64,000 bases of DNA from assembly GCA_037447605.1 (NCBI GenBank), contig CM074804.1, positions 2,666,001-2,730,000 on the forward strand. The letters run 5' to 3'. The position numbers and the translations under genes are program-made. The notes under the pieces were generated by a model, which was not told where the DNA came from, searched no databases, and saw only the letters and a list, made by a program, of their open reading frames with translations. The DNA is from Zygnema circumcarinatum SAG 698-1b (lineage: Eukaryota > Plantae > Zygnematophyceae). Below, piece after piece: positions 18,093-59,428 of this stretch (positions are counted from its first letter, which is position 1; each line of letters starts with the position of its first letter).

Positions 18093-18154
18093 CCAATGGA
18101 GGATCGCCACGTGTCAAAAATATCTGAAGTGAATACGTGGCTTGCCACCATTGG
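18093..18154. promoter_or_regulatory. Convergent pair of CCAAT-N9-CCACG (ERSE-I consensus) elements
   Basis: CCAAT 18093-97 with CCACG 18107-11; CGTGG 18136-40 with ATTGG 18150-54. Confidence 0.6.
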
Positions 18155-19017
18155 GTTGTTTCTAAAAATAATAAAATACCAGTGAAGGCCCTCCTCAGAA
18201 ACCCCGTCAGCCGCTGCTGCAAGTTTTGAGCTGCAAACCGACCCCCTCCCCCTCCCCTTCCCCTCGCCCGCCCGCCCGCGCGTGCTCGCCCCGCGGCGGG
18301 CCGCGAGCAGCCACGGGGGAACACGCTAGAACGAGGAAAGCCTTTTCTCCTAGGATTTTTCTGCGCGTGTTTTTGGGCATTATTTGAATTATTTGAATTT
18401 CACTGCTAGGTTTGAAGACTTTTCAGACGAGACTTCGATTTTTGACTTCGCGTTTTTAGGTCACCGAATGTGAAGGAAACTGCTCTGTAAACTCTGTGTG
18501 AGTGCACATCATGTCCACTTCGACATCACATCAAACAGAAACGATGAGTCACTACACCATCACCACAATTGCAACATCACCGAGCGACCACGACATCATC
18601 AACCACAAACGGGCACAGATTGTTCGGCGACAGACACGTGACGATCAGTTCCAGTTTCCGTTAATACGCTGAGCCAACATAATTGACGACTTCGCACCAA
18701 CTTTGTAACATAGACTCCCAAAATCCCTCACGTAAATCTTCCTCCTGCCCATCTCGTCAAAATTCTCGTACTATACAGATCCTCGTCCCTCCACTCTCTC
18801 TCTCGTCTCCCTCTCTCCCTCTCTCCTCTCCCTCCCGCTCTCCCTTCCCCCAACCTCATCCCCAGCCAAAGAAAAGTCCTAAATTCTAAACCCAGTAACG
18901 CCAATAACCTACACCAAGTTTAGCTCCATGCAATGTCAACATTTTGGTTCCATTTCATTCCGTTCTCAAGTTACGCTCTGCTCCGTTCCGTTACGCGCAA
19001 CAGAACTGCTCCAAGCC

Positions 19018-22000
19018 TCAGTCCGACGGTCCGAGCATGTTTTCAGGTCGAACATACTTGTCAAAATCTTCCGCACTTATCACGCCCAATGAGAGGGCAG
19101 CTTCCTGCCGCCCCGAAAAGGAAAAAAAGGAACAATGGAGGGGGGGGGTGATTGCCTCAGGTCAGTACTTGTAGAAGCAACATGACCAATAAATGGGCCA
19201 ATAACTGCATGCCGCGTGTCAGCCAGCAGTTGGGCACTTGCCTTGAGAGTGGTCCCCTCCTTGTGCGCCTTTTTCGCGACCGCCGCCGCCTTGTCGTAGC
19301 CGATGTGCTGCACTCCCTCGTAATGAAAAAAAAAAAAAAAAAAATACACATTGAGAATGACGGCCGACACCATGCTGACGTCAACCAGGCCATCCTAACC
19401 AAGTCACATTTGCGCATTGCTGACGTCATTGAAGAGCCAACCAAAAAGAAAGGACCGAAAAAAGAAGGGGATGTGCGTACCGGGTTCAGCGCTGTGACGA
19501 GCATTAATGACTGCAGAAAAAGCCCCCCCCCCAAAACCACGAAAAAAATTGAAAAGATTTGTGAGATAGGAAGGAACCTGGCCATTTAAGACAAGGGAGG
19601 GTCTCCCAAAACCAATCCAAGGGGGCCACGTGGCATCTTCCCCTCACCTCGCGCATGATTTGATTGATTCTTGTCGTATTCGCCTCAATTCCGACCACAC
19701 AGTTTTTGCGGAACGATTCCGCCGCATCTCCGAGAAGCCTCATCGACTGTTTGACGGAAAACCCCAAAAAAAAAAAAAAAAATGAAAAAAAAGAAGTAAC
19801 ATAATAATAACTACTATTATTACTCCATGTACTGTTAAATCACCTCATGTTCTCCTACAATGTGCTGAGCGAAAAAACAAAGGTAAATTGCCAAAAGGGT
19901 TAATAATGTAAACTTCCTTCCAAGATAGAGAGCAAGTTCCTCCTTAAAAAGCCAATGAAAGGCAATTTCTTGCCATGCAAAACCTGGCGGGAGTTTTGCA
20001 GTGTACCCGTATCAAGTTCGCCGCCATCATGGGCTTAAAAACGTTTAACTCGAAATGCCCATTTGCGCCCCCCATGGTGATGGCGACATTGTTGCCCATT
20101 ACCTGCACCAAAAAAAAAAAAAAAACCCCTAATTTTTACGGCTAAAAAACTGAAATAAATTGCTATTTTATGTGCAAACCTACCCAAACATTATTGGAAA
20201 CCCCATCATGTTTCTTTCCCAATGCGGAAGCTTTCCAAGTTTTTGCAACAAGCAACCAAAAGTACTCTTGGAGTGTTTTATTTTAAACCTGCGCGGCGAC
20301 CATGGTGAGCGCCTCGCTCTGCGTGGGGTTGACCTTGCCCGGCATTATCGAGCTGCCCGGCTCGTTCTCGGGGAGACGGAGCTCGCCCAGCCCGCACCGG
20401 GGCCCGCTGCGCCCCCCGAACCCTGCCGAAGGGCTTAGCTACCTCTCTCTCTCTCTCTCTCTCTCTCTCTCTCTCTCTCTCTCTCTCTCTCTCTCTCTCT
20501 CTCTCTCTCTCTCTCTCTCTCTCTCTCTCTCTCTCTCTCTCTCTCTCTCTCTCTCTCTCTCTCTCTCTCGCGCGCGCGCGCTCTCCCTCTTTCTCCCTCT
20601 CTCTGTAATCTGTCCGTCTCTGTCTCTGTCCCCCCCTCCCTCTCCGGGTGACCCACCTCTCTCTCTCCCACTTCCGTCTCTCTTACCCACCCCCCTCACT
20701 CTCTTTCTCTCTCCCTCTCTTCGTCGTTTCTCGTGCTCTCTTCCTTCCCCTCGTCTTCTGAACTCTCTTTCTCTCCTCTCTCCTCTTTCCCTACCTCTCG
20801 ATTGTCATTTACAAAACAAAAACTTTGAAACTTTGTCATTCTCACCTCCCCAAAAAGCGAATGTCGTTTGCGATTTTGAAGAGGGACACTGCGACCACAT
20901 TCAATGCACCGCTCGCCTCCACCACGGCGTCGTGCGCCGCCTGCGTTCCATGACATTCAGTTCCGTAAAAACCAACATCGCTGCGCTTCACTTCTCCAAA
21001 ACGAACCGCAAAAGGCCAAACCATGCACGGCATGGAACACAGCATATCAAGACAAAAATTTAACAGATGTGCTCAATTTCCACGGCAGTTGTAACATAAT
21101 AAGAGGGGCTAACCATCGTTTTTTTTCAATTGTTCAATCAATTGATATATGTACATATAAATATAAATAGGAAAAAAAAAAAAGACGGGAAGGCCTTACA
21201 AGGGCTTCGAATTTGTTCGGAGCGGTCTCAAAGGGCAGGCCCGTCTCCTCCGCCACTGCGGCTGCGATTTTGACATCGAATCTGCAAACTGCAAACCGGA
21301 AGTCAGAAAGAAAGCCGACTGACTGCTGGAGAAAATGTAAAGACTTTTGCAGACATTAAAGTGAAATTTTGAACACGGAATGTTCGCACCCTTTCTTGGT
21401 ATTGAGCCCTGTTCCGACAGCTGTCCCTCCTTGTGCCAGCTGCAGTCTCGAAGGGCAGATCGCATCAGGGGGGCGAGAGAGAAAGAGAGAGAGAGAGAGA
21501 GAGAGCGACAGCGAGAGAGAGGGTAAAACCGACAAAGAGAGGGAGAGAGGGCAACAGGAAGGGGAGGAGAGGATAAAAAAGAAAACGAGGGAAGACAGGA
21601 AAGGGGAGGGTGAACGAGAGAGCGAGGGGGGGGCGGAAAAGGAGGAGTAGGATAAAGTGGAGAAATAGGAAAAGGAGGGGAACGAGAGAGAGAGAGAGAG
21701 AGGGAGAGTGGAAGAGAGACGGAGGGGAGAACATGAAGCCTTGTTCAGCGCAGGAGAACAGAACGGAATGAAACAATGTGTAACGGAACGGAACGGCTGA
21801 CGGAGCACATAGAACGGGCTCACCTGGTAGAGGCGAGGCAGCGTTCCCTTCACTCTCTCTATGCCGTACTTCACCTGATTTACCACATTATGTCGACCCC
21901 AAAATTATGAAGTTTTGAGTTAATCTCTTCAAAAAATTGAAAAGGGCTCCAATTGTGCCGACTTTAAATCAAGGCCTAAAAGTATAAATTCCAAAAACCA

Positions 22001-57450: not shown

Positions 57451-57555
57451 GAGGCTACTAATCCAACATGTCAGCCACTAGTCTCATTACCTGTCCGTCT
57501 CAATTGGGCTGTACCAATCAGAAGTCACGTTGTCTGTGGATACTGATTTTCTCAG

Positions 57556-59428
57556 GTGTGAGTGTGTGTGTGTGTGTGTGTGTGTGTGTGTGTGTGTGTG
57601 TGTGTGTGTGTGTGTGTGTGTGTGTGTGTGTGTGTGTGTGTGTGTGTGTGTGTGTGTGTGTGTGTGTGTGTGAGAGAGAGTGTGTGTGTGTGTGTGTGTG
57701 TATTTTCGTGTGTGACTTTTACAAACAAAAAAGTCAACAAACTAACAAGTCAGTCAGTCAGTCAATCAGTCTGTGAGTCCGTCTGTCAGTCAGTCAGTGT
57801 TTGTCAGTCAGTCGGCGAGTCAGTCAGTCAGCTAGGTTGTCTGTCCATAGTCAGTCAGTCCTCTGGACTTTTTTACAGTCCTGTGGACTTTAAAGATTTT
57901 GCTGGAAATCGCTGGAAATCGCTGGAAATCGCTGGAAATCGCTGGAAATCGCTGGAAATCGCTGGAAATCGCTGGAAATTTTGAAAAGCTGGAAATTTTA
58001 AAATCCTGGACATCTGGAAATTTGGACATTTCGCAGTTTTGAAAATTACCAAAAAAAAAAAAAAAAATGATAAAAATGACATCATGATGTACATAACGTT
58101 CGTACTTACGCTTGACTTATGTGTTTTATAGCAAATAACCATGGACAGATTTCGGAAGGACCCGGTCCTGGAGATGACGATGTTCAAAAAGATCGAGAAA
58201 ATTTCGGAAACATAAGATCATGATGAAAAAAGGTTCGTACTTACGCTCACACTCTTGCATTGTATAGCAAATAACCCTGGAAAGATTTCGGAAGGACCCG
58301 GTCCTGGATATAGCGATGTTCGAAAAGATCGAAAAAATTTCGGAAACATAAGATCTTCATGAAAAAAGGTCCGTACTTACGCTCACACCCATGTATTGTA
58401 TAGCAAATAACCCTGGAAAGATTTCGGAAGGACCCGGTCCTGGATATGGTGATGTTCGCATTCTTTACATTTTCTTCATCATTTTCTTCATCTTTTTCTT
58501 CATCATTTTCTGATTTTTTTTTTTCATTTTTTGTGCGTGTGTGTGTGTGTGTGTGTGTGTGTGTGTGTGAGAGACAGTGTGTGTGTGTGGGTGAATGTGT
58601 GTGTGTGTGAGTGTATGTGTGAGTGATTATTTTCGTGTGTGACTTTTACAAACAAAAAAAAAAAAAAACAAAAAATCAAACTAATAAATACAACATGAGG
58701 CCACATGTTGTAATATTTAGATTGATTATGTTTTTTTTTTCTTTTTCTGTGAGTGTGAATGTGAGTGTGTGTGTGTGTGTGTATGTGAGAGAGAGTGTGT
58801 GTGTGTGGGTGAATGTGTGTGTGTGTGTGTGAGTGTGTGTGTGGGCGTGTGTGTGTGTGTGTGTGTGTTTGTGTGTGTGTGTATTTTTGTGTGTGACTTT
58901 TACAAACAAAAAAACAAAAAACAAAAAATCAAACTAATATATACAACATGAGGCCACATGTTGTAATATTTAGATTGATTGTGTTTTTTTTTTTATCCAC
59001 ACACAAACTGCAAGACAGAATGTGGCCACATTCTGTCGGCGCAGTTTGTGTGTGGTTTTTTTTTGGTTTTTTTCCCATTTTAGGGCTACGTGGCAACACC
59101 TGATTGGATAACAGACATCCAAAAACACACTACAGTACCAACGTGGCAATTTCTGACTGGATAAGAATTATAACTAATTCCGTTCGTGCTCATGTTGTAA
59201 TATTTAGATTGATTTTTTATTTTTGTTAAAAAACCACACACAAACTGCGAAAACAGAATGAGGCCTCATTCTGTTTTCGCAGTTTGTGTGTGGTTTTTTT
59301 TTGGTTTTTTTCCCATTTTAGGCCTACGTGGCAACACCTGACTGGATAACAGACATTCAAAAACACACTACATTTCCAAGGTGGCAATTTTTGACTGGAT
59401 AAGAAGTATAACAGATTCCGTTCGTGCT
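57556..59428. repeat. Composite satellite block: (TG)n 57562-57670, (CAGT)n ~57745-57860, (GCTGGAAATC)x~8 57901-57978, 135-136-bp tandem x~2.6 58098-58457, TG-rich units, and a duplicated ~240-bp unit with 60-bp palindromes
   Basis: Direct reading of periods and units. Confidence 0.88.

Follow-up and report, generated by a model that had tools for sequence, protein, structure and literature searches.

The stretch of 64,000 nucleotides from Zygnema circumcarinatum SAG 698-1b analysed in this study (hereafter the window) harbours a composite sequence element, CCAAT-N9-CCACGT, which is present in large excess, with a fixed spacing between its two halves and constraint on its motif letters, and which is found in the proximal promoter of a fumarase gene as well as in transposons that have moved. 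We consider it probable that this element belongs to the type of the endoplasmic reticulum stress response element I (ERSE-I), where a site for NF-Y is combined with one for a bZIP protein recognizing ACGT, and that it is kept under constraint, employed in one host proximal promoter and mobilised by transposons. From the sequence, we infer that NF-Y and a bZIP protein would be its binding partners, that their cooperative binding would be the cause of the fixed spacing and that the element would be active in transcription.

In the proposed mechanism, a CCAAT box, as site of the NF-Y trimer, would be held at a fixed distance from an ACGT-core bZIP half-site, mostly in form of a convergent dyad. 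The fixed distance would imply a contact between the two proteins, as in case of NF-Y and ATF6 or bZIP28 on ERSE-I, and the mirror-image arrangement of the dyad would render the module independent of orientation. It would serve as proximal promoter element of fumarase, with further copies located between genes and in introns, and it would form the apex of small foldback transposons resembling Mutator-like elements (MULEs), whose insertions have placed additional copies in the window. Transposition is therefore one of the ways in which the module spreads. Either a module of the host may have been captured by the transposon or, conversely, the dyads of the host may have descended from transposon apices.

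Composite sites of strict spacing are rare examples of cooperativity in transcription-factor binding that lend themselves to direct tests. In the window, a site described in textbooks solely as a switch for stress exceeds expectation about 100-fold and resides in the promoter of a housekeeping gene of the tricarboxylic acid cycle. If binding were confirmed, the genome would offer a natural experiment on the distribution of a two-factor module by transposons and a view of the role of ERSE-type elements before or outside the UPR (unfolded-protein response) in the lineage that gave rise to land plants.

Abundance and spacing of the composite site

The exact pattern CCAAT-N9-CCACG is found 13 times in the window, compared to 0.13 ± 0.34 expected from 100 dinucleotide-preserving shuffles, the richest of which contained a single match and none of which reached 13, equivalent to an excess of about 100 times chance. 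When the spacing of CCAAT-Nx-CCACG was varied from x = 0 to 24, all 13 matches were recovered at x = 9 and either none or one at each other value, and the reversed order CCACG-Nx-CCAAT did not yield a match at any of these spacings in the window. Upon permitting one mismatch, 18 further matches appear at x = 9 (versus 0–7 across x = 3–17), resulting in a total of 31 sites with at most one mismatch where 3.4 would be expected. The base following CCACG is a T in all exact sites, compared to 69 of the 141 CCACG words of the window (49%), thus defining CCACGT as the word that is kept. A spike is likewise observed for CCAAT-N11-ACGT, with 16 matches versus 0–3 at other spacings. Individually, CCACGT exceeds its expectation 3.5-fold (69 versus 19.5 in the window), and CCAAT is without obvious enrichment (148 counted, with equal base frequencies predicting roughly 125).

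The independence of the sites was investigated by BLAST searches of the 400 nt on either side of each of them against the window. Four single-copy loci, namely the site at position 806, a cluster at 18.1 kb, the site at 19612 and a dyad at 24.8 kb, have no paralogue in the window. The remaining sites, including seven of the 13 exact ones, are carried by three repeat families consisting of foldback elements (26 kb and 52.7–54.9 kb), a repeat shared between 55.1 and 59.4 kb and a 238-nt tandem repeat (59.0–59.4 kb). After masking of transposons, the residual 51.6 kb still contain six exact sites at four unrelated loci, with 0.116 expected from the observed frequencies of CCAAT and CCACG (Poisson P of about 3e-9 per site and of 7e-6 if every locus is counted once), and the spike at x = 9 is still present. 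These results are in line with a first-pass annotation of the same DNA, whose 12 exact sites are all present and to which a 13th, at 806 on the forward strand, is added from outside the range it had covered (18093–59107). Equally present are the near-sites it had named (26391, 55279 and 59612 on the forward and 55210 on the reverse strand), and its count of at least six unrelated contexts compares with our four single-copy loci and three repeat families. Its proposal that the spacing is what is conserved agrees with the single spike at x = 9, found in the window before and after masking, and with the mutually unrelated spacer sequences of the single-copy loci.

The assembly contains three gaps (8018–8117, 36165–36174 and 39600–39699), all inside GA/CT microsatellites. 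The site closest to any of them is a weak one-mismatch match at 35909, about 240 nt off, and the exact sites are all several kb away, hence the detection of the motif does not depend on continuity across gaps. As an outside control, the exact dyad pattern CCAAT-N9-CCACGT-N8..26-ACGTGG-N9-ATTGG was searched in public collections, where a single match turned up in 596 Gb of prokaryotic genomes (equal base frequencies would predict about 0.6), compared to four matches in the 64-kb window. It was also matched in two metagenome contigs. These, the sole exact dyads found in the JGI metagenomes, concern an AT-rich eukaryotic contig (about 37% GC) with a fragment of a copia-type reverse transcriptase (L002:1746-1804, also L001). 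The left arm of the L002 dyad, CCAATCCATGGTTGCCACGT, equals site 806 (CCAATCCAGGTTTGCCACGT) at 17 of 20 positions, a likeness that may be due to another plant having the same optimal site.

Dyads in the fumarase promoter and in transposons

The properties of the exact sites extend beyond the two cores. GCCACGT, which reads ACGTGGC on the other strand and thus contains the flank of an abscisic acid-responsive element (ABRE) or G-box, is present in nine of the 13, and CACGTG in only six, which favours a bZIP over a bHLH protein. Directly behind CCAAT, 11 of 13 sites have C or G, and at the next position the same number have A or G, in agreement with the flank preference of NF-Y. The repeat-borne copies and site 806 share the extended form CCAATCA-N4-TTGCCACGT.

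Five pairs of units are convergent, with the CCAAT boxes outside and the ACGT cores pointing inwards, as had been described before. In the dyads at 18.1 kb, 24.8 kb and in the elements E4, E1 and E2, the CCACG cores are separated by 24, 16, 13, 14 and 14 nt and the entire dyads span 62, 54, 51, 52 and 52 bp, respectively. A sixth, decayed dyad at 806–859 shows the same 54-bp span as the one upstream of fumarase. In each dyad the two arms resemble each other beyond the motif, with 5–7 of the nine spacer letters in common. Together with a palindrome of 90 nt at the fumarase gene, this likeness suggests that the dyads were born as palindromes that later diverged outside the motif.

The one clear case of a proximal-promoter position in the window is the exact 54-bp dyad of the fumarase gene (24820–24838 on the forward and 24855–24873 on the reverse strand), which is located 77–130 nt upstream of the ATG at 24743 and followed by a pyrimidine-rich stretch. 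The other host copies are found at different locations. Site 806 is placed 92 nt inside an intron of a transporter-like gene, whose preceding exon ends with ...TATCAG|gtaata at 714. In the 18.1-kb cluster, two of the three units constitute the 62-bp dyad, and the units at 18074–18092 and 18093–18111 abut through ATTGGCCAAT. With respect to CCS1, this dyad is situated about 1.5 kb upstream of the inferred ATG, with a GA/CT tract of 750 nt and a repeat in between, and with respect to fumarase the cluster is downstream of the last exon that was recognised. The 233 nt to the left of the dyad are represented by 78–83% of their words in the RNA runs of one study, which contain intron background, and by none in the other RNA runs. 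Searches for a non-coding RNA gene near this intergenic dyad gave no Rfam or tRNA matches in the window. Around the loci at 806, 18.1, 19.6 and 24.8 kb, we found no relic of a transposon, as judged by the absence of a terminal inverted repeat (TIR) core and of BLAST homology to repeats of the window.

The mobile carriers are listed as E1–E4 in Table 1. E1, E2 and E3 have TIRs of about 115–125 nt that start with GGGTAGTGATATTTCC (GGGTAGTG), and E4 has a different terminus with the inner TIR block in common. The target-site duplications (TSDs) of all four elements encompass 8 bp and are perfect in E1–E3. E1, E2 and E4 are each internally palindromic (E4 from 26082 to 26745), with the dyad at the apex and its centre coinciding with that of the palindrome within about 2–9 nt. 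The empty sites of both E1 and E2 are displayed by repeat R, that of E1 at about 17845–17860; the end of this paralogue is about 200 nt away from the dyad at 18.1 kb. The empty site of E4 is revealed by contigs of three runs, which join 25921 to 26923 with eight shared nt. The 8-bp duplications and empty sites thus illustrate that E1, E2 and E4 have really transposed. In an alignment of the six arms of these elements, the pairwise identity amounts to 100% for CCAAT and 94% for CCACGT, compared to 72% in the spacer and 43% in the flanks, and the motif letters thus stand out as islands of conservation within diverged transposon sequence. In E3, no ERSE-like site was found. Its open reading frame (ORF) scores with 25.8 bits against the AFT profile (cut-off 21.6) and with 22.6 bits, below the cut-off of 28.1, against FAR1, and no transposase catalytic domain was found for E3, nor in seven further ORFs.

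RNA contigs also match 24947–25640 and 26923–27030 with 7–9 differences per 600 nt, skipping E4, and therefore stem from expressed paralogues of a larger repeat that encloses the element. The segment 25022–25257 additionally matches 34575–34810.

In the repeat block at 55 kb, each 211-nt unit holds two near-units, CCATT-N9-CCACGT in reverse complement and CCAAT-N9-CGACGT, the latter overlapping a CACGCGC word. The block at 59 kb, whose segment 59428–59836 is a paralogue of 55093–55514, contains decayed copies at 59142, 59327 and 59379 on the reverse and at 59431 and 59612 on the forward strand. At 55279–55314, 55490–55525 and 59612–59647, within the 200–211-nt units, one ACGT core is common to the near-ERSE (CCAAT-N9-CGACGT) and to a decayed unit in reversed orientation, and the spacer contains (C/G/A)ACGCGC, which resembles the word CACGCGC bound by FHY3/FAR1. 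These sequences may represent subterminal repeats to which the transposase of a MULE-type element binds.

Known elements and competing readings

ERSE-I is defined by CCAAT-N9-CCACG and bound by NF-Y together with ATF6 in mammals and with bZIP28 in Arabidopsis, the bZIP protein recognizing CCACG only when NF-Y is present on CCAAT. It is a feature of promoters of ER chaperone and UPR genes and responds to stress of the endoplasmic reticulum (ER). The motif of the window corresponds to this consensus, as had been proposed, in its identical cores, its strict spacing of 9 nt and its ACGT extension, and it is promoter-proximal at fumarase. In contrast to ERSE-I, it occurs at about 100 times chance, usually as convergent dyad, with many copies carried by transposons or located in introns, and its neighbours, fumarase, CCS1 and a transporter gene with the site in an intron, are not genes of ER chaperones. 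The plant G-box/ABRE (ACGTGGC) is resembled in the ACGT, GCCACGT and CACGTG content of the sites given above, although in the window a single spacing ties the ACGT core to a CCAAT box, whereas classical ABRE coupling elements show a looser geometry. In Arabidopsis, an ERSE that agrees in spacing and in the ACGT extension (the bipartite octamer CCAA-N12-ACGT) acts as a position-sensitive promoter element (PMC5499772).

With respect to the carriers, the elements share with MULEs and their foldback derivatives the long TIRs (E1–E3) and TSDs of 8 bp (all four), within the range of 8–11 bp. Autonomous MULEs encode a transposase with a DDE domain and a WRKY-GCM1/FAR1-type DNA-binding domain, and the partner element E3 encodes a putative AFT/FAR1-type WRKY-GCM1 domain. 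They differ from typical MULEs in the 8-bp length of the TSD, since 9 bp are commoner in MULEs and 8 bp are typical of hAT elements, and in the failure to detect a transposase catalytic domain. Amplification of transcription-factor motifs by MITEs (miniature inverted-repeat transposable elements) has been described for E2F in Brassica, for bZIP60 (TGACGTCA) in Prunus and for G-box types in Solanum (Morata et al., 2018; PMC5950925). As in these cases, small non-autonomous elements with TIRs and TSDs redistribute a bZIP-type site, with many copies landing near genes (PMC5950925), but their cargo in the window is a two-factor composite of fixed spacing, doubled as a dyad at a foldback apex, and a MULE-like carrier takes the place of Harbinger. 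In the open-access literature, we found no report of an ERSE-type element in streptophyte algae, of ERSE in transposons or of a dyad at such density.

Several observations weigh against the proposed reading of a constrained NF-Y/bZIP element in host use. The arms of the two exact dyads outside repeats share five of nine spacer letters in each case, and the dyads may thus have arisen by palindromic duplication, perhaps from ancient apices of transposons, instead of two sites having been selected independently. Two of the host sites (806 and 19612) are intronic, no exact site is found in the 26.6 kb between 26442 and 53095, a region with a kinase, two RRM genes and a GH16 gene, and a module within 150 nt of the ATG is present in just one of roughly 8–10 recognisable genes. 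Finally, the core of E4 (26243–26636) is essentially devoid of RNA contig coverage, with the next gene beginning about 700 nt away. There is thus no sign of promoter activity of its dyad in the sampled conditions, although holes in contig data prove little.

The same distribution bears on the claim of a general promoter grammar that is spread by transposons. The spread is reflected in the TSDs and empty sites of the carriers and in the presence of the motif in host DNA and mobile elements alike (six exact sites outside repeats and seven within), as the first-pass annotation had stated, whereas its generality was not supported, as only fumarase has a proximal copy. The EFL1-like GTPase does not have a site with one or fewer mismatches within several kb of its ATG, and this gene together with the site-free 26.6 kb characterizes the module as frequent but not as a universal promoter element in the window. 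We regard it as possible but doubtful that the dyad is a high-copy, general-purpose NF-Y/bZIP promoter or enhancer module, present about once per 5 kb and continually reseeded beside genes by MULE-like foldback transposons. If this were the case, ERSE would have survived as a specialised form of an NF-Y/bZIP grammar that was once general, and housekeeping genes would be undergoing genome-scale rewiring by transposons.

As an alternative, the motif could be a feature of the transposons, either a remnant of their own promoter or a structure of the foldback apex, with host copies being decayed insertions without function in the host and the likeness to ERSE incidental. The location of seven exact sites in repeats and of the dyad precisely where the palindromes of E1, E2 and E4 have their apex would fit this scenario, as would the homology of the non-repeat arms past the motif, including the 90-nt fumarase palindrome, and the decayed dyad at 806 with its transposon-type extended consensus CCAATC-N-TTGCCACGT. 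We nevertheless consider it unlikely in light of host loci that lack a TIR core and transposon homology, of an autonomous-looking element, E3, without the motif and of two halves that both match canonical sites of host factors at the known ERSE spacing. Moreover, a neutral relic at −77 to −130 of the fumarase ATG would hardly have remained perfect on both arms. A reading of the 20-mer by other proteins, be it a lineage-specific factor for the entire composite or a bHLH protein on the G-box, would account for the extended preferences past the two cores (CCAATCA...TTGCCACGT). It appears improbable given that the CACGTG required by bHLH proteins is confined to six of 13 sites, that spacers vary freely at the single-copy loci and that the spacing is the same as in the known NF-Y/bZIP complex.

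The module could also mark a regulon of the UPR, as canonical ER-stress element in the manner of mammals and Arabidopsis. Site 806 is found in a gene resembling nucleotide-sugar transporters, a class that includes UPR-induced Arabidopsis genes. The sequence itself is identical to ERSE-I (PMC5499772). However, the clear promoter case concerns mitochondrial fumarase and the other neighbour the plastid gene CCS1, neither of them a classical ER-stress target, as was recognised earlier; about one site per 5 kb is far above the need of a UPR regulon, and the window does not contain a gene for a chaperone, a protein disulfide isomerase or a component of ER-associated degradation. A canonical ER-stress role for the genes of the window is thus unlikely, and we see little prospect for this explanation as a whole. 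An origin by chance or as artefact of composition or assembly was rejected based on the shuffles with at most one match versus 13, the spike at x = 9 alone, the excess in the masked window and the distance of the sites from gaps. DNA runs of the organism moreover contain 100% of the words sampled from the 233 nt beside the dyad at 18.1 kb. The probability of such an origin is negligible. The composite NF-Y/bZIP element remains the reading we favour.

Genes and further features of the window

The gene map is partial and based on Pfam matches and spliced RNA contigs, the RNA data consisting of contigs rather than reads. Its features are compiled in Table 1 together with the sites and their carriers.

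Table 1. Composite sites, carriers and genes of the window
Feature	Position	Strand	Description
TPT/nucleotide-sugar-transporter-like gene	left end of window	+	TPT/EamA Pfam matches on neighbouring exon
Decayed 54-bp dyad	806–859		exact unit 806–824 (+), partner 840–859 (−) with CCACGT decayed to CCGAAT; in intron of transporter-like gene
EFL1-like GTPase	ATG about 11572	−	
CCS1/ResB	inferred ATG 16601	−	
Repeat R	17487–17890		uninterrupted paralogue of the sequence hit by E1 and E2 (52.6–54.9 kb)
Intergenic three-unit cluster	18074–18154		18074–18092 (−, 1 mismatch), 18093–18111 (+), 18136–18154 (−)
Single exact unit	19612–19630	+	palindromic G-box CCACGTGG; fumarase intron, +18 to +36 past donor site (tblastn exon end about 19648)
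Fumarase	ATG 24743	−	
Fumarase proximal-promoter module	24802–24891		90-bp imperfect palindrome, self-inverted match 75.6% over 90 nt
E4	25930–26922		foldback non-autonomous transposon, TSD TTTTACAA; dyad 26391–26409 (+, CCGCG) / 26423–26441 (−)
Unnamed gene	contigs start at 27116–27178	+	
Protein kinase	37.2–38.4 kb		
Two RRM genes	40.8 and 44.4 kb		tandemly duplicated
GH16 gene	47.7–48.8 kb		
E1	52689–53606		TIR GGGTAGTGATATTTCC..., TSD TTACTCAA; exact dyad 53096–53114 (+) / 53129–53147 (−) at palindrome apex
E2	53984–54919		inverted copy of E1 (88.5% identity), TSD AAAAACTA; exact dyad 54470–54488 (+) / 54503–54521 (−)
Repeat block	55093–55630		exact unit 55096–55114 (+) and two 211-nt tandem units
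Repeat block	58957–59951		238-nt and 200-nt tandem units; exact unit 59089–59107 (−)
E3	60283–63485		TIR as E1/E2, TSD TTAAACAA; ORF with AFT/FAR1-type (WRKY-GCM1) DNA-binding domain

Introns of the fumarase gene are evident as CT..AC joints in RNA contigs at 22699–23405 (four of four runs) and at 24108–24589 (three of four runs, X1–X3), which places the junction of exon 1 and intron 1 at 24590|24107. Comparison of the fumarase exon with protein representatives mostly matched fragments. P0127, a match resembling a full-length fumarase, turned out to be the enzyme of a lichen fungus, and a close relative of the fumarase of the window was not found among 8000 homologues of P0127. Interstitial telomere-like arrays composed of CCCTAA, CCCTAAA and CCCTAAT variants are located at 11004–11125 and 23145–23312, the second within a fumarase intron, where RNA contigs give several inconsistent short joints.

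The best match of CCS1 is a cluster dominated by Streptophyta, and this plastid gene, together with the GH16 gene, the RRM pair and the kinase, is in keeping with an organism of the plant lineage. Immediately upstream of its inferred ATG, about 750 nt (16602–17350) are GA/CT-rich and of low complexity, and similar tracts flank all three gaps. Upstream of the kinase region, four CCACGT words, one of them in a palindromic CCACGTGG, are assembled within 110 nt (35071–35181) without a CCAAT at 9-nt spacing, which looks like a regulatory patch consisting of G-boxes only, unlike the composite module. The two RRM genes, which resemble glycine-rich RNA-binding proteins, are each contained in one copy of a tandem duplication of about 3.5 kb with 80–93% identity (40194–43373 and 43731–46614).

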